A stretch of 64,000 bases of DNA from NCBI GenBank assembly GCA_001643675.2, contig LSRY02000006.1, forward strand, positions 1,984,001 to 2,048,000, in the 5' to 3' direction. The notes beneath the pieces were generated by a model that was not told the DNA's origin, searched no databases, and worked only from the letters and a program-made list of their open reading frames with translations. This stretch comes from Monocercomonoides exilis PA203 (Eukaryota; Protista; Preaxostyla). This document shows, one piece after another, positions 32,865 to 62,609 of the stretch (positions are counted from its first letter, which is position 1; each line of letters opens with the position of its first letter). The position numbers and the translations under genes were made by a program.

Positions 32865-32900
<36 letters not shown>

Positions 32901-34149
32901 GGTGCGTGAGAAAGAGAAGGATAAGAGGAGCGAGAAGGTAAAGATGATGAAGAAGAATCATGTGAAATGCTTCGAGCAGGAAATGGAATAGAAGAGGCTG
33001 CATCTGCTTTTGAAGTGGAAGAAGCAGGCTGTGTTTGTTTGAGTGAAATGCGAGATGGTTCAGGGAGTGTGCTTTGAAGTGGTTGAAATGGCAGGTCACG
33101 CTTTGCATGAAATTGAGATTCCATGTTTGCGCTTGTTTTCAATTGATGTGCCGGATAAGAGGAAGAAATATGAGGCGAAGGTAGAGCAGACGCTAATTGA
33201 GGGTTAGAAAAAGAAGGAATGGAAGACGTTGAGAGACTGTTTGCAGTTGAATTTAGACTTTGCAAAGATAACATTGCATCAGAACGTTTTGAAGCATCTT
33301 GTGCAGGATCACTTGTAGAATAAGGTTGTTGTTGTCCTTCAGAAGAAGATTTCAAAAAAGAAAGTGGTTTGGCAGATGGTTGTATTGCCTTTGGTAGTTT
33401 TTGAGACAAGTATGGAAAATTAACTCCTTCTGAAATTTTTGATGAAACAGATGATTGCTGAACTTTCGATAACTGTTGAGAAGTTGAGTTTAATGAGTAA
33501 TTCCTTGCTTGAACATTTTGCTTCAATTCCGATGATGAATCGAAAGATGGTGTTGGAGTCAAACTTAAAGGGTTATTCAATTGTTGGATCGAATTCTTTG
33601 GAGAAGCATAAATTGAAGAGTTAACAAGTTTATTCGACTTTTCAATTGAAAATGAACTTAAAAATTGAAGGGATTCTTTCTTTAAAATTGAAGGTTTGCT
33701 TAAATTTTGTTCTTTCTTTTCAAAGTGGCCATCTTGGTTAATTAGTGCTAATCCAAGACGAGGTATTTCAGGAGTTTTAAATTCTTCAAACAATGGTAGT
33801 TCGTGAGCTAATGAAGATTGAAATCTATCTTTTTTGTTGGCATGCGCTTCAGCAACCCCATCATGATTATCTTTATTTGAATTAACTTCGGAAAGTCCAA
33901 AAGTCGATTTGTTAGATTGATTTTGTGGAACAGACAATTTTAACCCAAAATCAAAAGACTTTTCCGATTGCAAAAGAGATTGGAGCTCGTTTGAACTTGG
34001 ATTAGAAGTATCTTCAACTCTATCTTGTTCAAATTCAGACAAATCTTTCAAAATTCGCTTTTTTGCCCAGTTTTGAAGAGGCCTAAATAAAATTTAAAAA
34101 CATTATCATTAATCTTTAATAAAATTTTATTAAACTTGTTGCGTTTCAT
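30194..34149 (-). CDS. MPS1: Mps1/TTK-like protein kinase with long Ser-rich N-terminus (7 exons)
   Basis: [60 protein letters not shown] and [14 protein letters not shown] at 34149, TGA at 30194-30196. Confidence 0.8.
32757..32897. repeat. Compound (GAA)n(GAT)n microsatellite encoding poly-Ser in the kinase
   Basis: About 36 GAA units followed by about 11 GAT units. Read as TCA/TCT Ser codons on the minus strand. Confidence 0.95.
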
Positions 34150-34889
34150 ATATTTCGCTTTATTACCATTTAATTCTTTTAAATTACAAAAATAAATATA
34201 AATCGAATTAATTATCCCATTACATTAAATAAAAAATTCTTCAAAATATAATTATCTCTTCCGATGTAAATTTGCATATTTTGCATGAAAAAAAAAGCAA
34301 GCAAGCAATTATCAAATAAATTTGTTGGAGCCTTTCCAAAAAAGAATGTTAAAAAGGAAGATAGATTGTTTGGAGAAAAAAGATGTGATAAATATGTTCT
34401 GTTTCGATGATTGTATACGATTGTTCACATTTTTAGTCAGAAAATTTTATAATACGGCATTCAATTTGCTTTTTATATATTTTTTCTTTTTATTGATATT
34501 ATTTTACTGTTATTGAATTCAAGTTCATATATTTAATTTTTCCAACAATGATTTTATGAGTTTTTCACATAAGAAAGAGTTTCATTTTATGAAAAAAAAA
34601 CATAAATTTTGATCACAATAATTATCTTCCAATCGATCATATGTGATTTCACTATTGTTCTTTTGAATCAAAAAATTTATAATGAGTATTTATGTTTATC
34701 TCAACAAAGAATTTCAATTTTAATGAAAAAATAAATTTAAAATTCACAAATATTTTTCAGTTGAAATGTTTCATTTTTCTTCTTTTTCAAACACTTTTTG
34801 ATGCCTTTTATATTATTCGACAATATCAAAAATTTTTGGAAAAATGCAATTTCTATTTTTCACAATAAAAATGGGGTGAAATATTTCAC

Positions 34890-35709
34890 TTCATGAATTT
34901 TCATTGAAAAATATGCACTTTTCATTGACTTTCAAAGATCAAAAAACGCAATGAAAATGGGTCGATTTTGTGAAATTCGTGAAATGTTGAAAAACTTTAT
35001 GTTTTGATTTGAACGATGCCTGTTTCAGGATATGAAAATCAAATTTATTTTGAAATCTGAGAAAGTGAAACCAATTTATAAGTGAAGCAATTTTTTGTGC
35101 TTTGTGCAAAAAAAGCTTGAAAGATCGTATTTTCCCTCAAATGATGTTTCTCATGAGAACCCTTGTCAAAAAAAATATGGCAAAAATTTTTTTGTAAACT
35201 TCCTTTTGTTTAATTTTCTAATAAACAAAAAATTTCTTATTTTCATCAAATTTCTGTTCACACTTACGAAACTTTTCTGAATTGAAAATCATAACATCCT
35301 TAAGGTTCTAGTTCTATTTTTATGAAGTTTAATTAGTGTGAACAGAAATTTGATGAAAATAAGAAATTTTTTGTTTATTAGAAAATTAAACAAAAGGAAG
35401 TTTACAAAAAAATTTTTGCCATATTTTTTTTGACAAGGGTTCTCATGAGAAACATCATTTGAGGGAAAATACGATCTTTCAAGCTTTTTTTGCACAAAGC
35501 ACAAAAAATTGCTTCACTTATAAATTGGTTTCACTTTCTCAGATTTCAAAATAAATTTGATTTTCATATCCTGAAACAGGCATCGTTCAAATCAAAACAT
35601 AAAGTTTTTCAACATTTCACGAATTTCACAAAATCGACCCATTTTCATTGCGTTTTTTGATCTTTGAAAGTCAATGAAAAGTGCATATTTTTCAATGAAA
35701 ATTCATGAA
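34890..35709. repeat. Large palindrome A: 375-bp inverted arms, 70-bp degenerate centre
   Basis: 34890-35264 is the reverse complement of 35335-35709. The coordinate sum (70599) is the same at both ends, and the ORF track shows identical peptides on opposite strands. Confidence 0.97.
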
Positions 35710-36240
35710 CCAAAATGTTGGTGATAATTTTTGAAAATATATTTATACAATCAAAATTTTCGAACCAAAAATTTCCCTTGAATATCAACTAAGGAACATT
35801 GAAAAGTGGAATGGTCTTTTAGTAACCTCTTCATCTTCATTTGTGCAAAAATATTCGTTTTTGAAGAAGTTGTGATAATTCTATAATTTGAACACAAAAT
35901 CTCTTCCAAATGACAAACAACATTTGAAAAATGAACACCACGAAAAAAGTTATGAATTCAAATAATATCACCCATGTTTTTCGACATTTAGTATGATTTG
36001 CAGTGGAATTAAAAGAGAGATATCATCAACGAAAAAAGGAAATAAAAATCACATTAAAGATTTTTTTTTTAATGAGGAAAACAAGCACCATTGGCAATAT
36101 ATTGGTTCTAAAAGTATTTGTATTTTATTGTTAATAAACTTTTAAACTTTAATGTTGTCCTTTTCTATTATCACAAAATTAATATGTTTTGAAGCAGTTG
36201 CGAAAAATGATTTATTCAAAAATATGAAAATTTTGTCATA

Positions 36241-36276
36241 TGTGTAGGTTTTTTCCCTTGTGTGGGTTTTTTCCCT
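36241..36276. repeat. 18-bp tandem duplication
   Basis: TGTGTAGGTTTTTTCCCT followed by TGTGTGGGTTTTTTCCCT. Confidence 0.8.
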
Positions 36277-36989
36277 CACCATCAGATAAAATTCCAGAAA
36301 CACAGAATTGGAACAATGAATGAAAATCGTTTGATAATCAAGTATTTTCATCGTATGTTGCCAAAGTGAATGGTTGATTATTTTTGAAATCAAATTTTTA
36401 AAAACAAAATGATATGTTGGTCATTATTTCTAAAATCATATCTTTTTTCGGGGAATTGATTTTTCAAAGATTGTTTTCCTTTGGGAAGAAAATTTTCATT
36501 CAAGTGCAAAAACAATCAGAACTATTTCAAAAGCATGTGCATGATCTGAAATAAAAATCAAGAGGTTTTAAATATGTTTATTCACTTCTCATTGTTTTTT
36601 GTTCATATTCCATAAGAATTTTCGAACCGAAATTTTTGAAAGAACAAACATGATTTCAAAAATAATCACACATGTATGAAATTTTGATTTAAGTGTTTGT
36701 GTCTGAACTGTGAATAGTTTTGACGTCATGAATGGATAACTTTTCACCTATTCGTCTCATATTAATTTTTTTGTCACAAATGTGTAATGATTTTTTCATT
36801 TAAACAAAAAAATTTCCGTGAATGATGGAAAACTATTAGATTATTAACTCTCTGAGATTTTATTTGATTTTTAAAATAATCACCCAATTAATTATAAAAA
36901 TTCGAAAAAAATTCAAAAAATTTTGAAAAAAAAACAATAAAATTTTTAATTTGATAAAAACTTGATGATTATAAAGAAAATTTCTAATA

Positions 36990-39540
36990 CAGTCGGTGCC
37001 AAAGCCGATCCTTGGTGCGAAACCCGAACCAAATGAGAGAGAGAGAGAATGCGTTCATTATCTTTTCGAAGTTGTTTAATATTTCTTCAATGAAAAACTG
37101 AATATATTCAACTATTCGTTGAAACCAGGTATTTGGCAACATATTTAGTAATTAACCAATGAAATAATAAACAAAGAAAATGTATTTTGTTTGTTTTATT
37201 ATTGATAATATAAAAAATAATTGATATGAAGCAATTTTTCTAAAAGAAAATTTGAAATATATTCGTCAAAATGGTCTGAAGACTGAAGTTAAATTCTGCA
37301 GTTGTATTTAGAGTAGTATGTTTCTCTAATGCGTTTCTCTTTCTAATTAAATAAAGGAGAAATTTCTCTGGGAGGGTGATCGAAATCTCTGTTTTCATTT
37401 TTTGAAGTTGATTTCACTTCTTTTTCATCGTCTTTAAGTATTTCGATTACTCTCTTTACTTTTTTTCTCGATAACTTTTTTTCCTTTGCTGGTTCTTTAT
37501 TCATCAAATCAATTAGTTCTTGTCGACTGTGTTTCTTCTTTCGTTTCTTTTCAGAAGAAGATGATGTTGGTTTTCTAATTTCCATCAGCTATTTTTGAAA
37601 AAAATGTAAATGCTCTTTTGTTGATTCAATTTGTTTCAATAGCTCAGATTTATCCATCTCATTTGCTTCTTTTGATGTTTTTTCTTCAGTAGAATTTTCG
37701 TCGGTTGAAAATCTTCTGTGATTAACGATCAACTTTGTAGGTTCTTTTGATATTTCAGAATCTTTTAGAGATGAATATTTTGAAGGTTGTGAAGAAGGTA
37801 ATTGATTGTCGCTTTGAGGAGAATAATTCCAAAACAACTCTTCTCTTCAATCTCGCGATGAAACAGAAGTTTTAGAATTGCATTTATGATTTTGGATGGG
37901 GGATCCAGATATGCGATCCAAAACTGGGGCAGATGCAACAGGCCATACGCCTGTTTTTATGAACGCAGCTTTTATAGTCGAAGGCATTGTCGCAGCAGCA
38001 ATTGCTTCAGGGAATTTGTCGGCAAGGGAAGATCTGTATGAATGCATCGAAAACGGAAGAGGAACGTGAAATTTATTGTGTAGAGTTGTTTCAAACGAGA
38101 AAAGATGCACAAGTCGTACAGTTGCAAGAGATGGGTCAACTTTAGTGGAAAACACTTCATAATAATATTGTGTTCCTCTGCTGCGTTTGCAACAGAATCG
38201 TCTGAATAAGTAACATGATTATCCATAAGGAACAGGGCTTTATGTGTCGTCGTTGGCTTTTCTTTAGAAACAATCGCAGGTATCCAGAAATTGATCATGA
38301 CACTTCTAAAAATCTCTCAAGTCATCCATCCCGATGAGGAAGGAAGAACTTCAATATCGAAAGATGAAAGTGAAGAAAATTCTTGTGGTAAACTTTTCAT
38401 GGGCCAAAGGAGAAATCGCTGAAGTGAAGAACCATCTGCACAGACACACAGACACAAAGTTGAATTAGGTACTTTTGGATGAGCTGTTGAAGCAGGTGGA
38501 ATTTGTTTTTTTTTTTTGGACAAACAACCAGTTTGTTTGTTCTTTCACTTTAACAAAACGAAGGTTTATAAATATTAAATATTATCATTGAATTTATGTT
38601 ATTCCTGCTGCTAACCTCAGACAATTCTCCAAACCATTGTCTCACATTCTCTGGCGATTGAGCTGCTTTTTTGATAACTCAATAGGTCTCAAGACTGCTT
38701 CATTTATAATTTCGCTTCTTTTTAATAGCTTGTATGCGTTCTTTTCGTTGAGTTTTTTTGGTTCTTTATTTTCTCCACACACTTTTTCAAGAATATCCGC
38801 ACACAAAGAAAATAATTTTTTAAAAGAAAAAAAAAACCAAAAATAAATCAAACCATGTTCTGGACATCGTGCACTTTAATTGTTTCTTTTTCTGATAATT
38901 TTACAAGGACTTGATTTTCAATTATTTCGAGCTGGCGCGCGTTAATTATTAGAGGATCCCCATCCACTCCAACATCTCTTCCTTCCTTCTCCGCTTTTAC
39001 ACCTCTGAACCAAGCACCTTTGGAAATAATATTTTCTCCAACAACGGTTTGCCATTTCAGTGAATAATCACGGCGTATATCAAATATCTTTTTTGTTGTT
39101 GAAGGAATGGAACGTTATTTGTTGGATGCGAGTTCGCGATGAAGTTGAAGAGGAGAAAGATATGTAGAGTTACTCATGACATATGGTGTATGATCAGATG
39201 AATAATCAATTAAACTTTTGATTAGAGATGTATTTGTTAATTGTAATATGTAAATAATATATTTTAATTTTAAAATAAAACATATTAAAATATTTGGATT
39301 TATTTCTTTTTGTTGCGAGCACTAAAAATAAAAGATGTATTGGTTTCAAAAAACATCAACGAAAATAATGAATTGTGTACTTGTTGTTTCTTTTTATTAA
39401 TTTATGATTATTCCACATGCAACTGCCTTGGAAATATTTTACAAAAAATTCAATATAGAGATAATTTTACTGAAATGAACAAGATCAATGTGAATGCAAG
39501 GATCGGGTTTCGCACTAAGGATCGGCTTTGGCACCGACTG
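36990..39540 (-). mobile_element. Full-length, inactive pogo-type (Tc1/mariner superfamily) DNA transposon
   Basis: 41-bp TIRs CAGTCGGTGCCAAAGCCGATCCTT(G/A)GTGCGAAACCCGA(A/T)CC with 2 mismatches. TA target duplication at 36988-36989 and 39541-39542. Internal DDE_1 transposase remnants. Confidence 0.95.
37343..39177 (-). pseudogene. Pogo/DDE_1 transposase pseudogene
   Basis: TLCLCVCADG, SSSGWMT*, LFLMDNH-...-THLLQLYD (35 residues between the two Asp). First catalytic position reads IFNIYKP instead of the usual NxDET. Several stops and frameshifts. Confidence 0.88.
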
Positions 39541-39806
39541 TATTTGTGTTTAAGAAAAAATTTTAACTTTATCGCTTTTTCTTGAAAATATCTCCATTTT
39601 TCAAAACAAGTTGTGCTTTATAAGAAAAGATAAAACAAATTATTCCATCGTCTTCCAACAGTTTTTTTGAATATTTTTCGAACAACTATATTTGGCAAAA
39701 ATATAATTTATTAATTCAAAAGAAACAAGCATACAAAACATTTTACAAAACAAAAAGGGGAAAATGAAATGACAATCTTATTAAAAATAGATGAAATGAT
39801 TGAGTT

Positions 39807-42800
39807 TTATTTTTTTGAAGTGAGTGTTCCAAACAAAGAAGAGCGACCTGTTGGGGTTGTTGCCCTTTTTTGCCCTGTTGATTGTTTTTGCTGGGTAACT
39901 ATCGACGCAAAAACTCCTGGTCTAGTTGTGATAGTTGATGTTAATGAAGATGAAGACGAAGGTGTTGTTGAACGTGAACAAGGATATCCCCCTGTTTGCT
40001 GTGAATCTAATGTTGATGGAGAAGACAACGTATGAGTCCCAGCTTTGCTCTGCAGTCGATTGACTGACAAAGCTGGAGAAGGTTGATATGATGATGCAGC
40101 GACTTTTGTATTCATGGACTTTGTATCCAATTTTCCATCATCATTAGAAGAAGAAGATTCTGCCTGTGCGACTTGCTTTTGTTCCTGCTCAGTCATCTCA
40201 CGCAAATGTAGAGGTAATCTAGAATTTCCACTTTCCTTAAATAACCCACCAACAATCACAGTTGGTGTTACACGTTTTGGAGGTGAACTAGATGCTCCAC
40301 CAGAAACTGTTCCACTTTGCAAAGTAGATGCTGCACCACTTCCATCTCCAATTGCAGATAAATATTCCAACCCTGACTTTGTTGCACTTGGCTGCTGAGT
40401 CAATCTTGCTTCCATTTCGCTTAATTTTTTCCGCAAGTCATCATTTTCCCTCCGTGCTGCCTGTAGTCTATCAGCCAAGCCATCATGCCTTCTCTTCCAT
40501 ATAACCAAATCATCCATCTGACTCTCTCGACTCATACTTCCACTGCTTGCCAGACGCATTGATAGCGACGAAGAAGGTCTATCTTTTGCATCAGTTACTC
40601 CTCCAGTGCCTCTTGTCCTGTACACGCTCATTGAAGTCGCAGATCGTGTTGTATGTGGAGTAGAAGCTCGAGTGCGTGCTGGTGAACTTGATTGCGAGGA
40701 GGAACCCAAAAGCATTGAACTTCCCTTTTGCTCATCATTTGAAGTTGCTGAACGATCAGGAAGATCTGAGAGTGTATCGAGGAAAGGAGAAGAAAGCTCA
40801 TCTAACACTCCTCCACCCCTTCCAGTTCCAATGCTTACCTCAGCTCTTTCATCACCTCCAGCTCCTCCACCAATCCCACTAAGTCCTGTTGACTCAAGCC
40901 AACCCCGAATCTCGTCCAGCTTGTTCATTGCATCTTCTTTCACTCTTTTTTCTTGCGTGATAATTTTCCGAAGGCGTTGTATTTCTTTCCCGAAATGCTC
41001 TTCAATTTGTGAAGCTGTCTTTTGCGCTTTCACTTCTGATCCTTCTGCAATTTTCAGTTCGTTTTCTTTTCGTTCCAACTCCAAATACAGCTTGTCAATA
41101 TCCACATTGCTCCATCGACGATACTTTGCAAGCTGTTCTTCAAGCTGTTTCAGCACACGAGACTTTGTTGCTTTCCATTCCATCAACTGTGTTTTGTTTC
41201 GACTCTGCACATCCAAATCATACTGCACCGTTTCCAGCTTTGAAACAGCATCATTCAGTTTAGTATTGCTCTGTTCCAACTGCAGCTCAAGCATCCGAAT
41301 CTTTGCATCTCGTTCTTGTATCGATTCAAAGTTCTGTTCTCTTTCGAACTCTATTGCCTTTTCCAATTCTTCTGTTTTCTGCGACATTTGCTTCTTCAGC
41401 TCAAACTGCGAAACACGCGATTCGTTCTCCAATGTGGCAACTTGTTTTTCGAGTTCTGCATTACTTTGCCTAAGTTGTACCAACTCACGTGTAACGTCAC
41501 GATTCCCAAACACGCTCGAAGTTCCACTAAGAGCACCGGTGCCAGAATTTACATATCGCTGCTGACCGTGGCCAGATGCATTCGCAGATGTTATAGAAGG
41601 TGCAGCTCCTGGAGCAGGCGATGTTGTTCTCAATCCTTTTGCAACGTCTCTGAATCCGCTGCCAGGAGCATAAGGAACAGTACCTGCAGCACTAGAAGAT
41701 CCAGCCATACTTCCGCCAACTCCACTTCCTGCTGCTCCAGTTCCAGTAGATGCGACACTTATCTTATTCAGAGAGTCCATTGTGAGTTGATGCAGAGTCA
41801 AAATGGCACTGTTTTGCATTTCTCCTTTGTACTTTCTGAAGTTACCTTCAGCAGCGAGCAGCTCTGCCTGCAACTTAGAGATAAGATCATCATATTCCAT
41901 TTTCACCTCTTTCCGTATTGCCTCATCTTGTAAGCTCAATGTTTTCTCAAGTTTAGTTACCATATTTCTCAGTCTTTCTATTTCAAACACAAAATTCACT
42001 GCTCTCTCAGCTATCTCGCTTTGCACTCTCCTTCTCATCATTTGCTCCCTTACAGCTTCCTCTTTCTTCATCACCGTCAGTTCGCGTTCAGCATCGCTTA
42101 GACGCTGCAAGAACGCCTCGCCTAACAGCTGGGTTGACATTTGCCCTTGCTTCTGCCGTTCGTCACCCCAAACGCATAGTCCCTGAAGTATATCTTCCAT
42201 TGATGACATAAACAAAGAGCGAGTGAATAGTATTGCACTGTCATCGTTATCTGTAGTTACAGATATTCCTCTTCTCAGAAGCAAAGACACGGCTTCACTC
42301 ACAATGCCCACTTTCTCTTCCCATGCTGCATCCTCTGCTGCGGAAGGTAGCATAACAGCTGTTCCCGAAGGAAAGAACGGAACAATCGTTGAGTTTCCAC
42401 TCGCTGAAGATGATGGCGAATGAACTGCAAGGGGAAGATATGATGCAACTAATGATGATGCTCCTCGTTTGCGACGAGGAATAAGCGAAGCGATATTTGA
42501 AAGAGTGTTTCTCTCACCATCGATGCCTGATCCACCAGAAGCAGATGCTATTGAAGATGAAGCGCCAGATGGTAATGTCGCTGTTGGAACTATAGCTGCT
42601 GCAGCTACTGTAAGCTCCGATCCAAGCTCAACATCCTTCCTGGCTTGCTCTTCCACAATCTGAGCAAAGAGAATCTCACAATTCATCTCCACAAGAACCA
42701 TTGCATCAAAAATTAGCATTTTGTCCAGTTCTCTTTTAACCGCATCCAACTGTAGTAAAGTCCATTCTCTTTCTGTAACACCTTCTGGCCTTAAATCTTC

Positions 42801-45800
42801 AGATGATGAAATTTTCAAAAGTTTCCCATTCATTCCACGAAGAGGACTATCAGAGGAAGTTTCAGCAATTTCTCCTGCAAAATTCGTTTTCATCGATGCA
42901 GCATTTGTCACAGACTTTGATGCTGTTTCCCCTCTTGATGAAGTCGATTCTGTTTGCGTTTGGCTCATCGGAGCGTCTTTTTGATTGCTTTCTTCTTCCT
43001 TTCGTTCTCTATGCTCATCGAGCCATTTCAATGCGAGTGGAGTAAGTATTGTTTCAATATAAATCTTTGAAGCACGCGCATAATCCTCATTCGTTGCAAT
43101 CTCTCTTACTCCAAGAACACGCGTCAGATAAGTCTTTTTCATTTGCTGGAGTGCAATTGAATCAACTAGGGACTGAATAATCACATGAAGTTGCTCCAAT
43201 CCAGCAGCACTGCCATGTCGATGAACTGCAGCTTGATCCAGACAGCTATTCACAGCCATGTCAACAATCATCATCTCTTGCAACACTGCACTACGCTCAT
43301 TCGCTGGAATGTGTGTGAACAGTGAGCGTAAAGCCTCAATACGTGAAGGATTGTGTGTTGATGCTCCGAGGAATGAAGGGATTGCAGAAGATGGAGGAAG
43401 AGAAGGCGACGGTAAAAGAGTCGAAGGAGTGGAGACGTTCCAGAATGGGTTTGAAGGCAGCGATGAATTCAACAGTTGAGATGGAAGCATTACAGAATTT
43501 GATGAAGAGAGTGACTGAGGATTTGAAGAGGCATCGTAAGAAGAACGCGAAGAAGAAGCAGAAGTTGGGGAGATATCAATCAGCGCTTCGCTCATCATCG
43601 GATGGAATTGCATCTCTGTCATCTGTGCAACAGAGCGCATCTGACCTGGATGTGCAACTGGAGAAGCATGCACAAGCTCTCCTTGAATGATCTCTTCCTC
43701 TTCTGTCCACAGAAGCCCATCAAGAAATGCTGTTTCGTCGTCATCGTCGATTTCTTGGCTTGCTTTTCCTTTACCCTTTGTGCTGTTCTGCTTCCCTTTC
43801 TCTCCTTTTCCTTCTGCCGCTTTCCGTTTCACCAACATCAGTAATCGGTAGTATGCTGGTCCCAATGCTCCTCCTGCTGCTATCTGCTGTTTGATCATTT
43901 CTGCCTTTGCAGCAGCTTGCTCTTCAGGCGACTTCTCATCTTCATCTTTATCTTCTTCTGTTTTATCAGCTCCATCTTTGCTTCCAAAGTTTGATATTTG
44001 CTTCGTTTTATCTGCAGAACTGCCCTCGCCACTTTTTTTCGCTGTCTTTCCGATTTCATAATCCATTTTCCCTTGTCCTTCTGCATCTCTTTTAATTGCA
44101 CTTATCCTCTGTCTTACCTTCTCAAGAAATCGGTTGTCTTCAAACATTCGTGCTGCAGGAGCCTCCAAAACATCTGGAACGCTGATTGCGTTGCGCTTGG
44201 GCAAAGACGATGCTGATACAAATGAAGGAAGCAAAGTAAGTGTAGGTGGAAATGTGTAATCTGGAGATAATTTTGGATGAATTGGAGAATAAAGTGGGGA
44301 AGTCAGGCAATGAGGAGATGAAATGCAAATAGGACTGTTAACATTTGTGAGTAGTGTGGATGTGAGAAGAGAAAACGGCCCACCATTGTATCGTCCGTAT
44401 GGCCCATACCATATAAGTGTTTCAACGTCATTGATAAGCGAGCTATATGCTGCTGAAGGTGGGTTATAATACGAAAGCGAAGCTTGGGCGACACCACTTC
44501 CTGAAGCAGATGAAGATCGAGTTAATTTCAAATTCTTTGATTTTTGTGCGACTGGCTGAACTGTGAACTTGACTCCAGCATGTTCCCATTCCCCTCCTCC
44601 ATTCTCAGCTGCTGTCCGAATTGCCGACAAAACAGCAAACGAATTAGTTCCAGTGGCAATGCAGACAGAGCCTTCATCATCAATAAACACACCGCCTCCT
44701 CCTTCTCCCACCATCTCAGCAACAGACGGATTCCATCCCCACACAGACAAACCTGCATGCCCAACACCTTTCCCTCCAAGCAACCCTTTCCCAACTGACA
44801 CTGGCCCATCATTTCCTGGCCAAGGAGGGTTCATCTCTGCTCCGCTGCTCCCACTGCATCTGCTTCCTCCTTCAGTACCTGTCAGTGTGTTTCCACCACC
44901 GTAAGTTCCATGACCCTCTCCGCTTGTCCCACTTCCGCTACTGTGGCTGATCCATCCGCCTTCTGCACACAGTGCTCCCCAGCCAGGGCATTGCATCGAA
45001 TGTGCTGCAGATTCATAGCTGAGCGAAGGCGGACACATCGCAGCTGGAAGGTATTTTCGCATGAGATATAAGTTCTGAATAATAGCTTGATGCTCTAAAT
45101 AAAAAAGAAAGAGAAAGACAATTATTAATAAGAACGAAAAATATAGAAATTCAATGAAAATTAAGAGGGAAATTCTGATTATTTTCTTCTTTGTCTCTTG
45201 CACACCATTGTTGCTTGCTGCAGATGCACTTCCAGTGGAACTTCCGACAGCAGAAATTGCCAGCGAGGCATTTGGATTGGATGCAGCACCTGAGCGTAGA
45301 AGATGCTGGATTTGCTTCTGCTGCGAAGCAATCAGGTCTTTCAATGTCATTCCGAGTGCTGAAGAATCTGCTTCTGGATCTGCCATGTCTGTTGAAGATG
45401 TTTGGATGAAAAATGTTTTCGCATACGAGATTCAATGGTGCGGAAATAGAATAACAAAATATTGAATTTAAGATGTATGCAATTCACAACAACAATGAAA
45501 AATGGATGAATTAAGTGAAAGAAACATACCAATAGAGGATGTGGAGGATGCATTGCTTCCCATTCCGCCATATGGAAGTGAAGAAGCAGCTGTATATAAA
45601 AAGAAAAACCAAACAACGAAAAGAACAACGATATCGAATCACAAATAATCAATTCACAGAAAAACAAATGACAAGCAAACATATTCCAGAAGAAGATTGA
45701 GCAGAACTCATCGAAGTGAACGACACGCCAGCCGCTCTTCGAGCTGCTCTGATGCGCAATAGGGAATCCTGATATGGCGAAGGGGCAAACGGAGCATCCC

Positions 45801-48800
45801 CCAAAACAGCTAAATCTGTTGGCTGGTTGATCTCCCTTCTCCGCAATATCTGTGCCAGTTGTGCTGATGCTGCCTCAGCGTTGCTGCGCCCCATTCGCTG
45901 TGCGGCAAGACGGGTCGAAGCAAAACCTGATGGTGTTGATGGAGTGGATGCCATCTGACTGGAAGAGGAGCCCGTTGGAGTCAGAAGCGAAAGGTGTGCA
46001 AATGATCTGTTTGTGCGCATTCCTAATGGAGAAGGTATTGCAGTTAGTTCTGATTTTCAAACAATTTATTTCAATTCAAAGATTGCAAAAACAGAAATAT
46101 TGAAAAATCAGTAATTATCAATCGAGTTGAAACAGAATTCAAAGTGATCATTCGAAGCAAACAAAAATTTGCTTTTTGATGCAAAAACAGTAACATCATC
46201 AAACATTTCAATACTAAAATAAAAACATAAAGGTTAAATTCAACTCTCTTCAAACCTGTTGCAGATGACATTCCTTGCTGCCCTTCTGATACAAAAGAAG
46301 CTGCTGGAAACAACTCAGGATGCCTCACCATGAGCTCTCTGCCAAATGGCCCTGAAAGAATGTCCATTCCAGATATTTCAGTTCCGGCAAACGGAAACGG
46401 AGGCACATCAAACGGAGATTGCATTGCTGAAGCCGAACGATATGCATCCGCACCCATCTTCCCTCTTTCGCTTTCAATCACCGCTTGGGCTGCCGACAGA
46501 AAGTGTTCTGTACCTTCCATCGAAGAGAAGTTTGTGTTGTTGGTTGACTGAAAAACTGATGGAGGAGAGAAAATCTGATGGATGCGCATCTTTTCCTGGC
46601 GAAGAAAAGACGCCAATGAATTATTTTGTCTTGACAAAAAGGCCTCCTCTAGTTGACTAAAGAAGAGTCCGAATAACAGGTCATATCTTGTCCTCTCATC
46701 CAACAGAAAAGCGCAAACAAGAAATGGATCGCTGGCAAACGGAAGCTGATCTAGTTGAATTTTCAGGGAGTCTAATTCTGTAGGCAGCTTGCTTGATGAT
46801 AGGACATTTCCATTCATTCCTGTTGCTGTTGTGGATGTGGATGATGAAGATATTGATGATGATGAACTTGAAAGCGAAGATGAAGAAGAAAAGTTATTCA
46901 TATTTCGAGTATTAGCAAGTGAAAGTGCTCCCAACGAAAGACTGCTTTTCGAAGTTTGTATTCCGTTTGCTGCTTTGAGGGGGTTTAGCTTCGCAGCAGC
47001 TGCCTGCTTGTCCAAATCATCCAAATTCATTTTATCAATTACACTTGGATTCGCAACAAGATACAGCGCTGTTGAGTAGATATGCAGCTCTCTTAACGCA
47101 AACAGGAGAAAGACTGCAGCGCGCATATTGTGCAGCGTCATCGCATCTTCTCCAATCCGGAAAATTTCGCGCTCATGTGGAACGTACCATACATTGGTGA
47201 GGTTGTCTCCAACAAGCAAGTTCTCAAATGGCGTTGAAACATTTGCTCGATGATTATCTACAGTCCTTCCAATCAGATCGTCAGCTGTCATTGAGCCGCA
47301 CACAAATGGAGAGATGTTCGGAGATTGAGCTAACTCCATTCGGAACTCCCGCAGCATCTGTGAATGCTGTACGCGAAGGGCAAACATTGCCATATCCTTC
47401 CACATGTCTGAACAATATCCTTGAATCATGTCAAACTTCAGCTGTCTCAGCCTTTTTGAAAGTTCACCTCTTCGTTCCCTTCTCATAATCGATGCGACTC
47501 GTTCACTGTATCCTTTCAGTCTCAATTCTCGTACGGACAATTTTCGCGAATTCAACGGAACGAAAAAGGATGATGCTTCTCGCAGAGCTAATCGTTCCCA
47601 ACGATTTAGCTTTTTCATTTGTTCGGCTGTTGACAGCTGCACAGCAGATGCAGACGAAGCTAAGAACATTTCTGACCCATCTTCAATTCCATTGGCAATA
47701 TTATCTTCCACACCTGATTGTGTTGCTGCAACAGAAGTCAAGAATGTCTCATCTTTTGGTATCAACCCAACTTCCTCTTCTTTCTCTTTCAGAAACACGA
47801 AAAATTGATCCAACGGAATCTGATTGTATTGAACAACAATCTCCAACATGCATCGCTGAAGCACTTGCACTTGAACTGCATGGCGAAGATCGGTCAGTCC
47901 TTGCTCTCCAAACACCTTTGCACATCCAACAAACGAGGAGAAATCGAAATCAGCCAAATCTGGATCGAACTCTGAAATAGCAAAGTTCACATGCACAGTT
48001 GATGTGAATCCCTGAACCAGAGAAGCGACAGGACTTTTTGTTGAAAGTGACTGTGGTGATGGACTACTTTGAGGAGAGTATGCATCTGTTCCCAGTGGCT
48101 GTGGTGCATTTGAAGATAAAAGTTGAGGTGATTCGCCAGGAGATATTGGAGGAGATGTGCCAAAACCTTCAATCTTCTCAATACCATCATCAACTGATGC
48201 TAGACTTACAATAACCTTTGCAGGATCTCCATGCTCTCGATGCATAAATGCTGCAGCACTGTTTTCTCTGGACAAATTAGATCTTGATTGAGATGGCGTC
48301 ATTGCCTGAGTGTTAACTGAAGCAGCGATGGATGCATTGCATTCTTCAAAGTTGATTGGATCCAATTCGAATCGTCGAACACGCAACCCGACGCACTCTG
48401 CCTGCTGTTTGTACACTCCAAAGAGCAGCTCTGTCACTTTGTGTGCATACAACAATTCGTGTCTCAATCTCACTGCTTCCAAAGCATGTGTCAGTGCAAC
48501 AACAGAAATCATGCTGATTTGTGTTAGCGATGCAAGCGATGCATTCGCCGTGGACTGCCCTGATGCTGTATCAAAGAATGAAGAAAGCTTAAGCTTCAGA
48601 ATCTTCAATGTGTATTGCATTCGGTTTGCATCGTAACTGCTTGTGCTACTAAATGAATGAAGGGCAGCAGATGGTGAGTCAGCATTCTGAACAAGAGATA
48701 ACGATGATGGAGTTTGCACAAAACCAGAGGCAATCCGTTCGGCGTTTGCAGCTGCATCTCCTCCAGCTTCTGTTTCATCAACTCTTTCCTCTTTTAATTT

Positions 48801-51800
48801 GTGCGTTGAATCCGATTGCGCAATGCCATTATCCTGTGTCGCAGAGTTAGCTTCTATTTTTAATCCACTCACACTTCCTCCTTCTCCTACAGACATAATT
48901 CTGTCCCGAGCAGTATTTGCCTTTGATCCAAAAGGAGTGAACTCAGAATCCAATGAAGCAACAAAAGTATCAACTGCAGCACATATTCCAACAGGATTTT
49001 CAATCACATCTTCGTTTGAAGCAGCTTGAACAGAAGGGTGAACGAAAGCAGAACGGTCCAGCTCAACATATTCAGTAACTCCTCCGTTTGGCTCCATTCC
49101 TTCCGGAGTCAGTGAAGGTGTAGTAGCAGGAGATACACCGCTTCCAGCTGCTTGTGAAATGCTGGGCCTTCTTGTCATCTCTGCAGTCGCAAGAGTCGTT
49201 GATGGAGATGCCTCAGTAACAGCACTTTCATCCTTTTCAAACCGCACCCAGCTGACAATCGCCTGCTGTAAAAGTGCTGCATGGAGTGACAGTGTTGCTA
49301 ACATTGTTGCTGGATGATGCAATTGCACGAGTTGGTTAAATGCTTCTTCCAACACTGCCGGAATGTGTCTCACCTGTGCGATGGACTGTGGAAACTCGAA
49401 GGGAGCAAACGGATGGCCACGAGGAATAAGTGTAATATCTGTGAGTTTATATACATCCAGCGGTGGAAGTGGAAGGCCAATTGTGGCATCTGTTGAAAGC
49501 TGTGAGAATGTCGAAGACACTTCGCGAGAAAAGCGCCGCTCGTCGTTGATCATACGTGACATCACTGCATGAAGCAAGTTGAACTGCATCTCCAGACAGA
49601 TGATCTCTGTCGCATATGAATCCACAAACGATTGTGCTGACAAGTCAATTCGTGGGCGGAGTGCAAGCAGATCAATTATCAGTCGAGCCAGTGCCTTCCT
49701 CTCGTTCGGATCGCAGCAGCACTCGTACGCTTCGACATACAAATCAACAACCTTCCGCTTGGAACGCTGGAAGAGCGCCTCACATTCGAGAATATCAGAC
49801 AGCATAGCCTGTCGATCGAACAGCGATGACGTCTCTCCAAACAGCTGCTCCTTCAAACGTTGAGGAAGAACTGGCCCACTTTTTGTGGTTGTCATGTGAA
49901 GTGAGTCAAACAGATCATTCATTTCTTTTGAGATCTTCGCTGATAAGAAATGTGACACAATGCGAAGAAGTTCTGATTCCAAATGTGTCATCATTGTTAT
50001 TGCTTCCTCATACAGAATAGTCACTCCATGGCAATCTCTCACTATCATCCGCTCTTTCTCACCCAGCTCGCATATGTCGTCTCTGTGGATCAACCCTTTC
50101 AATCCTCTCATCTGCAGAGTAGTCAACTGTGGACACGTCTCAAATGTTGCTGGGAGAACTGTCTGAATTGTTGTTCCTTCAGATGCAGAAGATCTGCTGC
50201 TGTTGCTTCGACGTGTTCCACTTCTTGTTCTCATACCGCTACCACATCCTGTGCTTTTTGCTTCATTGAATCCAAATGTTGTCGTTTCTGGTGTTGTAAA
50301 TAAGGTGAATGCGGAAGAAATAGGAAGAGCTTTTGTGTTCTCGCGTGCCATAAGCTGTGGTGTTTGAATCATTGGATTGAGGTTTGGATCTTCAACAATA
50401 TTGACATCAAGCGGCGCATGCAGCAGAAAATCAACACTATCATTGGAGATTTTTTTGGATGATGACGAGCCACTAGCGTTTCCTCCTCTTCCACCGATAA
50501 ATCGACTGTTATTATTCTCATCCAACAACTCATCTTCATCTCCACTATCCCCTGAGCCATCGCCTCCTTTTCTTTGTCCATGGGTGCTTGGATCAAACTC
50601 ACCTGGCAGCTTTGTTTCACATTCCCACGGAAATCCTAGTGCATCCAGTGTGATCTTTCTTTGGATAGATGAGAAGTAGTTCATCAAACTCAGCAGACGT
50701 TCTCTCATCTCCACACACCGCGCATGGCGCAGAAGATACATTGCAATCAACTTCCTCTTTTTGAGCCTCTTCACTGAACCGGTCGCTGTTTCAGTTGCAC
50801 CTGCTCTGAAAGCTCCTCCGCTTAGACGAGAACCACCTACTGAGCTTATGGCGCTGGATCTCCCACTCCTCCTTCCTCCACCTCCATCAACACCAAATTG
50901 GATGATAACGTCTTCTTCATCTTCTCCTTCTTCATCCTCTCCGGAAGCAGATTCAGCACCTTTGATGCCAGAGTCTCCTCCAATCACTGAATGAGAAATT
51001 GCCTGTGATGCAGTGTCAGTGAACAGTCGTTGCTTCTCTGCAATTGCTAAATTCTCTTCCAAATTTCTCCCCACAAACGAGATGGACGATCCAGCCATGG
51101 ACGAACCAGGTGTTGTTGCTCCGCTTCCTGCCATTCGAGCGCTTCTACCTCGAGTGCTTGCTGTTGTCGACCCAGGTGCTGATACCAGTGGAGAGTTGGA
51201 AACTGAAGTAGACAGTGAAGGTGATGAAAGTGGAGAGGGTGACAGAGAAGCCTGAAATGAAGCTAGTGCGGTCTGTCGCGCCATGATGGCAGTGGTGATG
51301 CGTTGACCATGTGTGTTTGCAAGAGACTTGGCTCGTGAAAGCAGCACATCCAAATCATTGATCTTCAACGACTCCATTTCCACACGCAGAAGTCCATCAA
51401 TAGAGACTCGTGCCAAAATACCCTGTTGATAGTCCTGCCTCTGCGAGATATGAGGCAGCGGGGCATATGGCACCCATGGCGAAGTCTTAATGAAAGTGTG
51501 CTGCAATCCATAGCACTGCACATGCTGCTCACTTGGCGGAATCATTGACGAAGTTGGAGCTCTGCCTTTTCGCGTCATAAACGAGTCTGAACGCACATGA
51601 ACATTCGAGCTATTTCCCTTCGATCCATCTCCTCTAACTTTTCCATCTCCATCTACTTCTCCTTCATCTTCACCGTTCTCATCTCCGTCTTCTCTGCCTC
51701 GTCCTTTGCCTGTTCTCTTCCCCTTTCTCTTGCCTCCATTCCAGCCACTTCCATAGCTGCCATCTGCGTCAGCTGTAGCGCTTTCAACACTCTGTGACAA

Positions 51801-53324
51801 TGGCACAAACAACTCACATTGAGAATACAATGGATAAGTTGAAGACCTCTTCTGCTCAGTAACAAGATCAGCAAATAATCTGGCTGCTCGAAATGAAAAT
51901 CCTTCGCTCAAAACATCGCGTGGGGTGTCTGCGATGCCAAATGCACGGCCCAGTTGATACAACACAGCATCGAGTGAAAGTGTGTCGCTGATGAGAACTG
52001 GGATGGGAGTCTCAGTTTCTTCTTTCATCTTCTCACTTGCTCTCTTTTGGGCGTTGTAGAAGTCGGATTCTGAACGATACGGACGGATAACACTATCTGA
52101 AAACATTCAAATAAAAAGATCAGAAAAAAGAAATTAACACTACAATAGACAAATAATCAAGCATGCCACTTTGGCTTCTTTGTTCTGTCGTCTCGTTTTG
52201 ACTTGTCTGACGTGTTCCTTTTGGCTGATTGAAAATCTGTTGAGCCCTTGAAACCACCTCATATCTGTGCGTATACGGTAGCCAATGCAAAACAGCCAGA
52301 AATGCATTTAAACGCTTCGATGTTCGCGCAGAAAAAACAGTTTCTCGAAGCATGATTCGAAGATCATCTGGATGAATGTATTGAAGAAGGTTATCATCCA
52401 AGTTACCGAATGAAGTGGTATTTCCGCTGGATGACCCTGACGAGGATCCAGAAGAGCCTGATGATTGAGATCCTCCACCACCTCCAATCTGACGACCCAT
52501 TCGACGAGACGATGTTTTGAGAGTTAGTTTTGGTGTTGATCCTTTTGGGTTGCTTGTATCACTTGAGGCAGATCCCTCAGCCAAAGATATTGGTCTATAA
52601 AATCTTGCTGAAAGGGATCCTTCTAATCTCCGCAATCTCATCAATGCATCTTCATATTCCATATCAAATCTTTCCAATCGTGCAACAAATGCAGGGAATG
52701 AACGCTGATGCATTGAGTTTGCCGTGCAAAATCGTGTCCATCGCGCCAAATAATTGCATTTCTGTTGAATAATTTCAAACTTTCTGCTTTGGTAATACTG
52801 CAGCAAAATTTCAAAGATCGTATTCAGAGATATTTGTGGCTTAATCGCTGATTCAATCTAAGAAAAATACATATTTTTCCATTTCAAGAGAAATATCATA
52901 GAATGAAACAAATAAATTATAAAATTGTAGGACATACTTCTTCTGCGTATAAATCTGATTCGATTATAGGAGGTTCTGGAAATTTGACTTGAGAAAGAGC
53001 TCTTAAACAATATTCACGGTCACTACGAAAACGCTTCAACTCTGGAAGTACTATTGGAGGTCTGGCGGATGCGTTTTTCAATTTTCCACGTTGATCATCT
53101 CGATCTTTAAGCAACGTCTTGCAATTGTTTGCCAAAGTTTCCAGTTTAAATTCGAGCTCTCGCTGGCTCAGAGACAATGCCTTATTGTTCCAATCTGTAT
53201 AAGCAAGAGAGCTAGGATATTTTTCATGTAACAGTCTTATTTGCTCCTCCTCTCTATCCGCCCTCATGCAACAAAAATGTTTTTTAATTTTTGAATGATT
53301 GATCCTGCCCATCGTTACGTGCAT
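39807..53324 (-). CDS. Giant (~4,300 aa) CCDC162-like coiled-coil protein (about 7 exons)
   Basis: ORFs 52917, 52120, 46071, 45649 and 39807 are collinear and separated by short introns (several junctions checked in frame). Blocks recalled from the CCDC162 family: KCNYLARWTRFC, LLSLMNYFSSIQRKIT, VRDCHGVTILYE, YVEAYECCCDPNERKALARLIIDLLALRPRID. C-terminal coiled coils. Exact start uncertain. Confidence 0.7.
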
Positions 53325-53558
53325 TCATTCATGAAATTTTTTGCAACAGGTTTGTAGTTTAATTCTGAAAGGTTGTAATTTTATATATAAAAATATTCCA
53401 ACAACATTCAAATCCTTAATTTTCTTCATTCTGTTAAATTGTTTAAGGGTTTTTTTCCATAACTTTAGAATTCATAAACTGAATTTATAATATTTTGAAA
53501 AGTTTGTTTCCGTTGAGAGTTATTTTTTATTTACACATTTTCATTTTTTAAAATTTAG

Positions 53559-54253
53559 ATGGCTACACGACAACCAACAATACCACCATCAAAAGTTCTT
53601 CATATTCGAAATGGCTCACCAGAGCCCAATGAAGTTGATCTGACAGTTATCCTTCCGTTTCTTTCTAATTTTGGAACGGTGATTTATGTTGTTACCATGC
53701 CGAAACTTCAACAAGCGCTCGTTGAAATGGATACACTGGAATCAGCACAGAAGGCTGTTTCATATGCCACATCTTCTCAAATCGAAGTTCAAGGACAACT
53801 TTATTTCTTGCACTTTTCTAAAAGTCAAAGTATAAACAGAGAGCCTTCATACAGGAGAAGTTTGCTATTTTTAAAGTTTTTTTATTGAATATCAAAATTT
53901 GAAAAAATATTTCATCAGCACTTGTTGAACACCATGGAGAAAAGATCCTTCTTGCAACAGTGCATAATCCTCTTTACCCGATTACAATGGATATTGTGAC
54001 AGCTATTTTGAAGCCATTTAATGTTCTTCGAATTGTTATTTTCCACACTCACGGAATTCAATTTCTTGCGGAATTTGCCACACCAGAAGAAGCACGCACA
54101 GCAAAAGATGCACTTGATGGAAGAGAAATTTACTCGAATTGTTGCCTATTAAAGGTTGTTTACTCAACTCAAAGTACAACCTTAAATGTGCGCTACAACA
54201 CAGACATGACATATGATTTCACACGTCCTGACCTTCCTTCGAAGTCTGCGTAA
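53559..54253 (+). CDS. hnRNP L/PTB-family RNA-binding protein with two RRMs (2 exons)
   Basis: PSKVLHIRN, QALVEM, NPLYPIT, LRIVIF, LDGREIYSNCCLLKVVYS and LNVRYN..YDFTRPDLPS. Intron ~53860-53918 restores the frame. Confidence 0.9.
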
Positions 54254-54919
54254 AAAATCTCACTCTTCCGGAAATATAAGCACAAGAGTATTTTTTACTG
54301 ACAAGATTGGAAAAGATTCTGCTCTTACGTAAAAAATATTCTTTGCTTGTGGGATCATCATTCATACACCCACACCATCAATCACGAACTCATTCATATC
54401 AATGTCACTACATCATTTGACCCATTCCACCAAAGCTGCACATCATCCATTCACATTTCTAAATAATTGTTTCAATAATCAATCCTCCTTTCTATTCCTT
54501 ATTATCGACTTTGAACGTAATAATTAAAATTTTTTTGATGCTTTTCTGGTATCTTTTTTGAAGTGATTCATTATATGTAAGAATGCGGCTGCTATTTGTT
54601 GTTAACGCTTGCAATTTTTAATCTATCGATATAATAATTTTCAGATAATTGAAAACGTTGAGTTTTAAAAATCATCTCCATCAATACAAATAATCTATCC
54701 CTGAAAATAGATATATTCGAGTAGATTAAACAATGGCGTTCAAGTTAATATTTATTGACATTTTTTGTGGAAAATACAAAAACTTAAAGAAATAATACAC
54801 AAATAAAAATTAAATTTGTAGCATAAGAATTAATAACTTATGAGCTACAAATGATACAAATTTTGTGTCACCTAAGATGGTGAAAACGTAAAAGGAATGA
54901 TATGAATTATTGATAACAG

Positions 54920-55209
54920 TTATTTATCTTCTTTGATTTGTCTATGAAGTAAAATAATAGCAAAAATATAAACATCAACATTTTCTAAAATTTTTCAAAT
55001 GCATACGTGCACGTGAAAAGCAAAGCACTTGCAGCGAGGAATATTGAGCTCGCAACAAAGCTGAGATTTCTTGGAAAAGCCGCGAACATTCCCACAAAAG
55101 TTGCTGTTTGCGAAGCTGGCCAATACTCTTGATAAATGGAAAACGCTAATGAAGCTAGAAATAACAGGAATAATATTCCTGAAGACACATAAGAGCAAGT
55201 TGCACGCAT
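54920..55209 (-). CDS. Small two-TM membrane protein (~75 aa, 2 exons)
   Basis: ATG at 55209, two hydrophobic stretches, and a GT..catag intron giving a TQIKEDK* end. Confidence 0.5.
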
Positions 55210-55372
55210 AACTCTGATCTGAATAACCAAAATAAAAGATTTGACAATAAAAATGGTTTCATAAATGTAGTTCTTACTATCGCAAGAAATCAAATTTGAT
55301 ATACATTATATTCTAGCATTCCTTTTGTTGTTTTATCACTTCGTCAAAGTACGAATAGAGCTTTATTTTGTT

Positions 55373-56417
55373 TTTTAATTATCTAGGGCGGTTTTTTTAT
55401 CCGGACAAAAATTTAAAATTAAAATATCTCAATAAATATTCAATATTAAATTTCAGAAATTTGCATAGTTGTATATTAGTATATATGACATCTATTCATA
55501 TCCAAATTTTTATTTGTTGTGCTGTATTTATGAAGAAATAAATTAATTTTATTTCAGAAAATCTGCCTTTTGATGAATTTTTCTATTTCAATAACACGAT
55601 TCAATTCATCTTTTAAACACACAACTTATTTTTTCATGATATAAACAATTTTGGCTATTTTTTATTTTCGGCAATTTGCTCGTTTGGACTGAATAAAAAT
55701 TTGTCATTTCAAAAAAGCATTGTCAATGGGACAACTTAAAAAATATTTTTCATAAAATGCAGGAGCATCTAACTGAAATCAACACTTGCATTAATTAATA
55801 TATTAGTTATATAAAATTTCTTTATTGATGAAATTTAAAATGATTCAGTGAAGATTTTGTAAATGCAATTTGTTTTTTTAATTGATGATTTTCGAATACA
55901 TTTTATTAAAATTAGAATAATATTGATTTTATGAAATCTTCACTGAACCATTATTATTATTACATTGTGGTAAGTTTATATAACTAATATATTAATTAAT
56001 GCAAGTGTTGATTTCAGTTAGATGCTCCTGCATTTTATGAAAAATATTTTTTAAGTTGTCCCATTGACAATGCTTTTTTGAAATGACAAATTTTTATTCA
56101 GTCCAAACGAGCAAATTGCCGAAAATAAAAAATAGCCAAAATTGTTTATATCATGAAAAAATAAGTTGTGTGTTTAAAAGATGAATTGAATCGTGTTATT
56201 GAAATAGAAAAATTCATCAAAAGGCAGATTTTCTGAAATAAAATTAATTTATTTCTTCATAAATACAGCACAACAAATAAAAATTTGGATATGAATAGAT
56301 GTCATATATACTAATATACAACTATGCAAATTTCTGAAATTTAATATTGAATATTTATTGAGATATTTTAATTTTAAATTTTTGTCCGGATAAAAAAACC
56401 GCCCTAGATAATTAAAA
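55373..56417. repeat. Large palindrome B: 443-bp inverted arms, 159-bp degenerate centre
   Basis: 55373-55815 is the reverse complement of 55975-56417, with the same coordinate sum (111790) at both ends. Confidence 0.97.
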
Positions 56418-61779: not shown

Positions 61780-62094
61780 ATGTGTATAATTGCGTGCCTG
61801 GAAGTGGTACAAATATGTCTAATATATAATTATGAATATCGTATCTTTGTTGTTGGGGCATTTATTTGATCGAATTGTTCGTTTTTTATTATGGATCCTC
61901 GCTCACAACACATCAAAAGCACATATTTTTTCTTTTTCAATAATATTTAATAATTCAAAATAAATTAGTCCAAATACTTCAATTGAAATGAATTTTGAAA
62001 ATATGATTAATTCCTTCACTTATTGATTTTTAAGTCTCTAAACCGAAATTTGAGAATATTTATTTTAAAATGTGTTTTTCCTTTTTAAATAATA

Positions 62095-62609
62095 CACCAA
62101 AAATTATTTAAAATGAGAATTTTTGTATTCAAAAAAATAAAAATTGCATTCAAAATAATAATATTGCAAACAAAATGAGAACTTTTGAGTTCAAAATGGA
62201 AATTTTGTAAACGAATTAATAATATTTACAAACGAAATAATTATTTTTGCATTCGAATTAATTATTGTTGTAAACCTAACTAAAATTAATTCGCACTCTC
62301 ACCAAATTTTGTGAAAATCAGTTTGCCACTTTTGAATCATAAATAATTTTGTGTTGTCATTATTATTTCGCACGAAAGAAAATTTTTTTGAAATTTTTTA
62401 TTTTAAAAAGAAAATTTTTAGAATTTGAAATTAGTTTAATTCCTATGAAAACAGAAAATATTTTCTTTTCGAATGCAAAATTATTTATTTCGTTCGAAAT
62501 TTTTTCATTTCGAACGCAAAAATTATTAATTTGAATAAAAAATTATTATTATGAATGAAATTTTTATTAATTCGATTGCTAAAATTCTCATTTAGAATAA
62601 TTTTTGGTG
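62095..62609. mobile_element. Non-autonomous TIR element (CACTA/CMC- or foldback-like MITE) with ~21-bp subterminal repeats
   Basis: Ends CACCAAAAATTATT(TA/CT)AAATGAGAATTTT in inverted orientation. Each arm is built of degenerate 20-21-bp units such as AAAATGAGAATTTTTGTATTC and GAAATAATTATTTTTGCATTC. Confidence 0.7.

Follow-up and report, generated by a model that had tools for sequence, protein, structure and literature searches.

Palindromes with near-identical arms in Monocercomonoides exilis as probable debris of fold-back DNA transposons

INTRODUCTION

How can two palindromes with no evident sequence similarity both hold on to arms of several hundred nucleotides with next to no mismatches, while the short stretch between the arms is asymmetric? 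The question is raised by a 64,000-nt stretch of the genome of the oxymonad Monocercomonoides exilis PA203 (C58:1984001-2048000; hereafter the window, in whose coordinates positions are given), which carries two such structures, P1 and P2. An initial annotation had read them as one recurring architecture, in which the arms are homogenised as the centre erodes, and had proposed them as a candidate palindrome-maintenance system and, if the architecture recurs, as a genome-wide class of foldback elements or functional hairpin loci. Comparison with the rest of the genome suggests instead that P1 and P2 are probably debris of fold-back DNA transposons, whose arms are identical owing to copying from one arm to the other near the hairpin centre.

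The PA203 assembly comprises 82,301,135 bases in 101 contigs (N50 of 1,379,369; Nanopore), and was generated with Canu 1.8 and Nanopolish followed by ten rounds of Pilon (PMC8767320). Repeats make up 46% according to the genome paper, in which those termed "unclassified" account for 35% of the assembly and in which palindromes, inverted repeats, and miniature inverted-repeat transposable elements (MITEs) are not mentioned (PMC8767320). A search of the literature on Monocercomonoides in combination with palindromes or transposable elements returned nothing relevant.

RESULTS AND DISCUSSION

Geometry of the two palindromes

Both palindromes were verified by a repeat search and by base-by-base comparison of their arms (Table 1). 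The arms of P1 mirror each other perfectly over 375 nt, with symmetry breaking outside them at 34882 and 34887-34889 and inside them at 35265, 35267, and 35268. Those of P2 extend over 446 nt with a single mismatch (55816/55974). Perfect inverted repeats of this length cannot have arisen by chance. Both structures are therefore real, as initially described, and the description of the arms as free of mismatches stands for P1 and fails, by one position, for P2.

The centres differ from one another. The 70 nt at the centre of P1 have no significant symmetry of their own (self-complement score, z = 1.4 versus shuffled sequences), whereas the 153-nt spacer of P2 is a diverged continuation of the symmetry (z = 5.9). 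The proposal that the spacer is itself decayed palindrome has statistical support in P2 and not in P1; a short palindrome almost on the axis was found in both (CCTTAAGG, 2 nt off the axis in P1; TTCGAA, approximately 1.5 nt off the axis in P2). Repeat searches revealed no similarity between P1 and P2, in agreement with the initial annotation.

P2 as a copy of a dispersed foldback MITE

By its sequence characteristics, P2 is a copy of a putative non-autonomous foldback MITE, here named FB-A, which forms a dispersed family of approximately 1 kb with arms of ~430-450 nt around an asymmetric loop. A search of the P2 arm against its own genome gave 40 scored matches (194 candidates) at 81%-88% identity, most of which were arranged as inverted pairs reproducing the whole ~1.05-kb structure. 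Alignment of the ends and flanks of these copies identified a common terminus, TA followed by GGGTGG TTTTTTTATCCGGAC, and many copies have a 17-nt terminal duplication. Genome-wide, the terminal 23-mer has 100 occurrences at ≤1 mismatch, and its reversed control has 0. In most copies, GGG is preceded by TA at either end; this TA is palindromic and inseparable from the inverted repeat itself.

No ORF (open reading frame) of ≥120 aa is present inside 55373-56417, and Tandem Repeats Finder detected no tandem sub-repeats in the arms; P2 is therefore not an element of the Drosophila FB type. Likewise, no 8-9-nt direct repeat was found at the flanks of FB-A. A search for the empty site, with the flanks of P2 joined over one TA and ≤2 mismatches allowed, gave no match elsewhere in the genome; hence, P2 is not nested in another repeat family.

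The mirror symmetry extends slightly past the end of the transposon, by 11 nt in P2 and by 8 nt in another FB-A copy (L005). In P2, this flanking symmetry may possibly represent a unique, short palindromic target site. Adjoining one FB-A copy on contig C35 is a second, unrelated palindrome of ~1 kb (L004 457-1458), which is 93% identical over its full length.

Concerted evolution of the FB-A arms

Evidence that the arms are homogenised comes from comparing arms within and between FB-A elements. Arms of the same element are 95%-100% identical (n = 15; median of 99.3%; 7 of the 15 elements at 100%), compared with a mean of 86% between elements, and the nearest relative of an arm was its own partner in all cases (30/30). 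Relative to the family consensus, 508 derived bases are present in both arms of an element and 79 in a single arm; for P2, the corresponding numbers are 48 and 2. Differences between the most closely related element pairs are also mainly symmetric (9:2, 17:0, and 22:5, both arms versus one arm). Taken together, these comparisons argue that the arms of FB-A are homogenised and co-evolve within each element, as the initial annotation had supposed for the two palindromes. Because cut-and-paste transposition never rebuilds the arms, each lineage must have copied arm from arm many times.

The position of the remaining mismatches provides a second line of evidence. Across 17 elements, 42% of arm positions are mismatched at <50 nt from the axis, 25% at 50-99 nt, and 16% at 100-149 nt, falling to ~0%-3% further out and rising slightly again over the outermost ~25 nt. 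This profile bears out the earlier suggestion that symmetry decays towards the axis. Homology-dependent copying with edge effects would be expected to give such a gradient, since the copied tracts would least often reach the turn-around region and the extreme tips. The loop itself is homologous across copies, asymmetries included, and is therefore inherited family sequence rather than the product of local erosion. The "eroded centre" of P2, understood as decay at this locus, is accordingly not retained.

Youth alone could be invoked in place of ongoing arm-to-arm copying, with the arms being alike simply because the insertion or inverted duplication is fresh. Several intact pogo-like transposase genes in the genome are 90%-100% identical (see below), such that transposition may be recent, and a single recent event would suffice for P1, a structure found at its own locus only and with a right arm that is a partial duplicate. 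Nonetheless, we consider youth an unlikely explanation overall, given that the arms of a lineage would diverge with or without movement of the element. The closest relative of P2 is no more than 88% identical to it, yet the two P2 arms differ at 1 of 446 positions and share their 48 derived bases. All 15 elements show the same arm pattern, and it holds for comparisons of close relatives too. These patterns therefore call for a step of arm-from-arm copying in every lineage.

P1 as a local inverted duplication

P1 is built from two other dispersed families. The first, MITE "B", is ~266-275 nt long with GGGG...CCCC ends (alignment of 27 copies with flanks), and at least 1,846 candidate matches to it are present in the genome, most of them solo. 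In 19 of the 27 copies, including the one in the window, the same 4 nt (AAAT, ATAT, or ATTT) flank both ends as a duplication. The second, repeat "C", is ~250-260 nt long and itself palindromic, with at least 847 candidate genome matches; the P1 centre sits within a copy of it. The arms of "C" elsewhere are a mere ~79%-86% identical, and another copy in the window (63042-63270) also has diverged arms. Close to this second copy, at 62095-62609, the window contains a hairpin-type repeat consisting of a diverged inverted pair (77%).

The two sides of P1 are not equivalent. The "B" copy of the left side is complete, with both target-site duplications, whereas that of the right arm lacks the outer 17 nt, a recognizable outer terminus, and the target duplication, and mirrors only 34890-35138. 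It is therefore a duplicate and not an insertion. As regards microhomology, ~6 of 11 bases match just beyond the outer junction in AT-rich DNA, which is not above chance. P1 as a whole thus appears to be a local inverted duplication rather than a transposon, one that turns around inside "C" and stops 17 nt short of the end of "B". The idea that P1 is a maintained functional locus gives way here to an inverted duplication of sequence from two MITE families.

Two further palindromes, encountered by chance, involve the same family. On contig C44 (L051, C44:455640-457570), perfect arms of 391 nt are made up of "B" and 115 nt of adjoining flank, and a matching duplication is missing from the second "B", a structure that seems to follow the same inverted-duplication logic as P1. 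On contig C9 (L052, C9:1413397-1414982), a head-to-head pair of "B" copies is perfect over ~250 nt, with 25 nt beside the axis diverged. Diverged inverted pairs of "B" (75%-80%) exist as well. The expectation that the architecture recurs genome-wide was thus upheld: the copy-number search with the arms found FB-A, "B", and "C" dispersed, and palindromes were present on C44 and C9.

Identical arms could also be manufactured during sequencing or assembly, by chimeric fold-back Nanopore reads, Canu correction, or the ten Pilon rounds. In a pipeline of this kind, overlaps between reads and reverse complements could average out near-identical arms. As a check of P1, four DNA runs from a single sample (two dating from 2016) were compared as contigs over 34300-36300. 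The left flank continues into the P1 arm in a contig spanning 34300-34908, and the centre with both arm junctions is carried by a 119-nt contig (35246-35364) in two runs. The arm continues into the right flank over 35680-36275 in contigs of four runs, including both from 2016. All three showed 0 differences from the assembly, and the comparison gave no alternative letters. With its three junctions present in raw-run contigs, P1 is therefore not an invention of the assembly. The structure of P2 is in turn vouched for by its many putative homologs, as the whole of it recurs at dozens of loci with different sequences. Moreover, elements with arm differences of 1%-5% are preserved, their mismatches are structured by position, and both palindromes are embedded in a contig of >2 Mb, in which the sequence to either side of them is unique. 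An artefact is hence highly improbable.

Pogo-like partners and nested elements

Termini of the FB-A type also occur in recurrent pairs ~2.04 kb apart, in elements whose own inverted repeats are short (L066-L073). The sequence common to these elements and FB-A comprises 51 nt on the left and 34 nt on the right, plus TA flanks. The 2.04-kb element encodes a 403-aa ORF matching Pfam DDE_1 (pogo/Tigger type; E = 1.3e-15), and is presumably what mobilises FB-A. Genome-wide, DDE_1 had at least 1,089 candidate matches.

A 3.6-kb copy on contig C17 (L021) was considered as a candidate autonomous FB-A. It proved to contain an unrelated 2.59-kb pogo-like element within an FB-A loop, and five other intact 2.59-kb copies without FB-A arms ruled out the autonomous reading. 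This second pogo-like transposon (L060 753-3344 on C17; L061-L065 on C16, C24, C80 twice, and C40) is bounded by inverted repeats of ~50 nt, carries a TA duplication, and retains an intact DDE_1 reading frame of 510 aa. The six copies are 90%-100% identical, so the transposon is possibly active.

In one 2.04-kb element (L070, C16:399485-401914), the flanks are mutually inverted over at least 200-236 nt at 98.3% identity. This copy either has inserted into the centre of a further hairpin element or lies on the axis of a larger palindrome. Nesting into hairpin centres does happen, as illustrated by the C17 case and possibly by L070. A 4.8-kb structure between FB-A termini (L074, C91:1061465-1066701) has 1.69-kb arms at 99.7% identity, each holding the same ORF of ~207-258 aa, and a similar pair of termini is found at C91:1518821-1523656.

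Proposed mechanism of arm copying

In the process that we consider probable for P1 and P2, one arm would be re-copied from the other by homology-directed repair or by template switching during replication. Copying would turn around near the hairpin centre, amounting to arm-to-arm gene conversion or fold-back copying. The centre, as the turn-around, would never be copied and would thus remain asymmetric. If tracts require homology on both sides, axis-proximal and outermost bases would tend to escape and diverge, whereas a tract that occasionally overran the end of an arm would leave a longer palindrome. For P1, the side with the neighbouring "B" may have been the template from which the opposite side was built as its mirror image, with the turn inside "C". 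Arm-to-arm copying would in this way account for arms that are perfect around a centre left untouched, for the mismatch gradient and the divergence of the tips, and for both the overruns and the incomplete copy of "B". It would also account for why pairs that are short or already diverged stay diverged. The molecular pathway of copying is what we infer from these patterns, and the P1 arms may stem from one recent event or from repeated events.

Several points weigh against this account. The case for conversion is drawn from paralogous copies in one strain and one assembly, and the mobility and target duplication of FB-A are likewise deduced. The P1 arms could represent one recent duplication with no later homogenisation, and the 11-nt overrun of P2 could reflect insertion into a short palindromic target. 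Short or diverged pairs have not been homogenised ("C" at ~79%-86%, "B" pairs at 75%-80%, and the pair at 62095-62609 at 77%); arm copying is therefore not universal. Read correction by Canu could in principle blur near-identical arms, and the raw-run comparison addresses P1 alone; countering the former, elements with arm differences of 2.5%-5% persist in the assembly.

The genome also contains a far larger palindrome, on contig C10 (C10:959865-972616; L025 and L053-L055). It is 12.7 kb long, with arms of ~6.3 kb at 99.85%-100% identity, an FB-A loop on its axis, and unique sequence on both flanks. A profile search detected no Ku domain in the genome, while the positive control was matched. 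Metamonads have been described as lacking Ku and DNA-PKcs and as probably dependent on homologous recombination (PMC8516963). Mre11_DNA_bind is present, and the SAE2 family had no match in a search that lacked a positive control. A more far-reaching proposal is that hairpin-seeded arm copying is unusually active in Ku-less M. exilis, perfecting and lengthening arms and growing multi-kb palindromes that carry genes, in which case P2, with its 11-nt overrun, and P1, whose 0.4-kb arms take in an adjacent MITE, would be the smallest stages of a continuum leading to the C10 palindrome. We put this forward tentatively, as something slightly short of an even chance.

Genomic setting of the palindromes

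The surroundings of P1 and P2 are 25%-28% G+C, and both palindromes are located between long ORFs. Their gene setting is judged from the ORF list of the window rather than from gene models, and is approximate. P1 lies ~840 nt upstream of a minus-strand ORF starting at 34051, and P2 lies ~2 kb upstream of a small minus-strand ORF and ~560 nt past the stop of the ORF at 56974-61812. At the level of ORFs, the earlier remark that both precede minus-strand starts is thus approximately correct. Pfam searches of the long ORFs neighbouring P1 and P2 returned no informative domain. The ORF at 31553-34051 (minus strand) is long, with extensive GAA/GAT (acidic) codon repeats, and has a weak, partial protein-kinase match under the Pfam cut-off. 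An Rfam search over 34000-57000 of the window gave zero matches.

This setting bears on whether the hairpins are functional loci maintained through selection or a dedicated system, for example as a source of double-stranded RNA or small RNA, an origin, or a chromatin landmark. Both palindromes are intergenic, in AT-rich DNA not far from ORF starts, the architecture recurs, and long perfect hairpins could yield double-stranded RNA if transcribed. Yet the copies belong to ordinary dispersed families with transposon termini, no conserved position relative to genes is apparent, and neither an Rfam family nor informative domains in neighbouring ORFs were found; the sequencing runs found for the stretch were of DNA, with no RNA run among them. 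The boundaries of P1 also fall within a MITE, as would be expected of a repair accident more than of a designed element. A functional role or dedicated maintenance system, as originally proposed, is accordingly very unlikely, and debris of fold-back transposons acted on by arm-to-arm copying remains our preferred explanation.

Table 1. Coordinates of the features of P1 and P2 in the window
Feature	Position	Strand	Description or basis
MITE "B", outer target-site duplication AAAT	34869..34872	+	Outside the perfect palindrome; alignment of copies with flanks
MITE "B", complete copy	34873..35138	+	Termini, duplication, and alignment of 27 copies
P1 left arm	34890..35264		Mirror of 35335-35709; starts within MITE "B", 17 nt in from the transposon end
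MITE "B", inner target-site duplication AAAT	35139..35142	+	Matching flanks
Repeat "C", small, palindromic, on the P1 axis	35168..35431		Own-genome search
P1 asymmetric centre (putative turn-around region)	35265..35334		Holds CCTTAAGG at 35298-35305
P1 right arm	35335..35709		Includes an incomplete mirror copy of MITE "B" (35461-35709)
P2 left arm	55373..55818		446 nt; mismatch at 55816
P2 mirrored flank	55373..55383 (mirror 56407-56417)		11 nt; palindrome extends past the transposon end
P2, putative FB-A copy	55384..56406		1,023 nt including TA at each end; termini TA followed by GGGCGG TTTTTTTATCCGGAC
P2 loop	55819..55971		Weakly palindromic, asymmetric, homologous across FB-A copies; TTCGAA at 55891-55896
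P2 right arm	55972..56417		Base-by-base comparison

Significance and comparison with known systems

The analysis adds three previously undescribed transposon families to the amitochondriate M. exilis, from within the 35% of "unclassified repeats". FB-A provides clean natural evidence of concerted arm evolution in hairpin transposons, with a gradient from axis to tip that can be measured. Hairpin elements are also likely seeds of a palindrome-rich genome architecture, as suggested by the FB-A loop on the axis of the C10 palindrome, and together these structures offer natural material for studying how fold-back repair operates in a eukaryote that lacks classical end joining. What looked like a palindrome-maintenance system is thereby recast as a concrete, testable transposon process.

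In overall form, FB-A resembles Tc7 of Caenorhabditis elegans, in which a short unique centre separates two long inverted repeats and which is moved by the Tc1 transposase. Like Tc7-like foldback MITEs of the Tc1/mariner-pogo group, FB-A is short and non-coding, consists almost entirely of inverted arms, and is present in dispersed copies with TA at both ends, only its extreme termini being common to the element that encodes a transposase. It differs from them in its arms of ~430-450 nt, its DDE_1 (pogo-type) partner, and its oxymonad host, and in that we infer its mobilisation and TA duplication.

In the behaviour of its arms, FB-A resembles the palindromes of the human Y chromosome and the inverted repeats of plastids ("ebb and flow"), where gene conversion between arms keeps them alike. 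As in those systems, the arms of an element are far more like each other than like related copies, the spacer is not homogenised, and boundaries shift by overruns. The scale is different (10 kb to Mb there versus 0.4 kb here), and the arms of FB-A are transposon sequence and not genes.

The Drosophila transposon Galileo offers a further parallel, in that its long terminal inverted repeats expand by inverted recruitment of adjacent sequence, and its authors suggest that long repeats attract recombination and conversion (PMC3573991). Both Galileo and FB-A have long, structurally dynamic terminal inverted repeats, which in Galileo, and probably in FB-A, recruit neighbouring sequence in inverted orientation. 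Galileo, however, belongs to the P superfamily, with 7-bp duplications and tandem sub-repeats, whereas FB-A has no sub-repeats, is flanked by TA, and has a DDE_1 partner. Drosophila FB elements have arms of tandem sub-repeats and a 9-bp duplication, neither of which is found in FB-A.

Finally, hairpin-seeded fold-back inversions and inverted duplications have been described in yeast and human cells (PMC7467729, PMC10766186). P1, the C44 palindrome, and the C10 palindrome fit the pattern of these events, with a turn at a short inverted repeat capable of folding into a single-strand hairpin, an asymmetric centre, and perfect arms; in P1, the turn-around appears to be located at a pre-existing short inverted repeat, "C". 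Whereas fold-back inversions are usually dicentric or terminal, the palindromes of M. exilis are small and interstitial, have a boundary on either side, and seem to be fixed in the genome.

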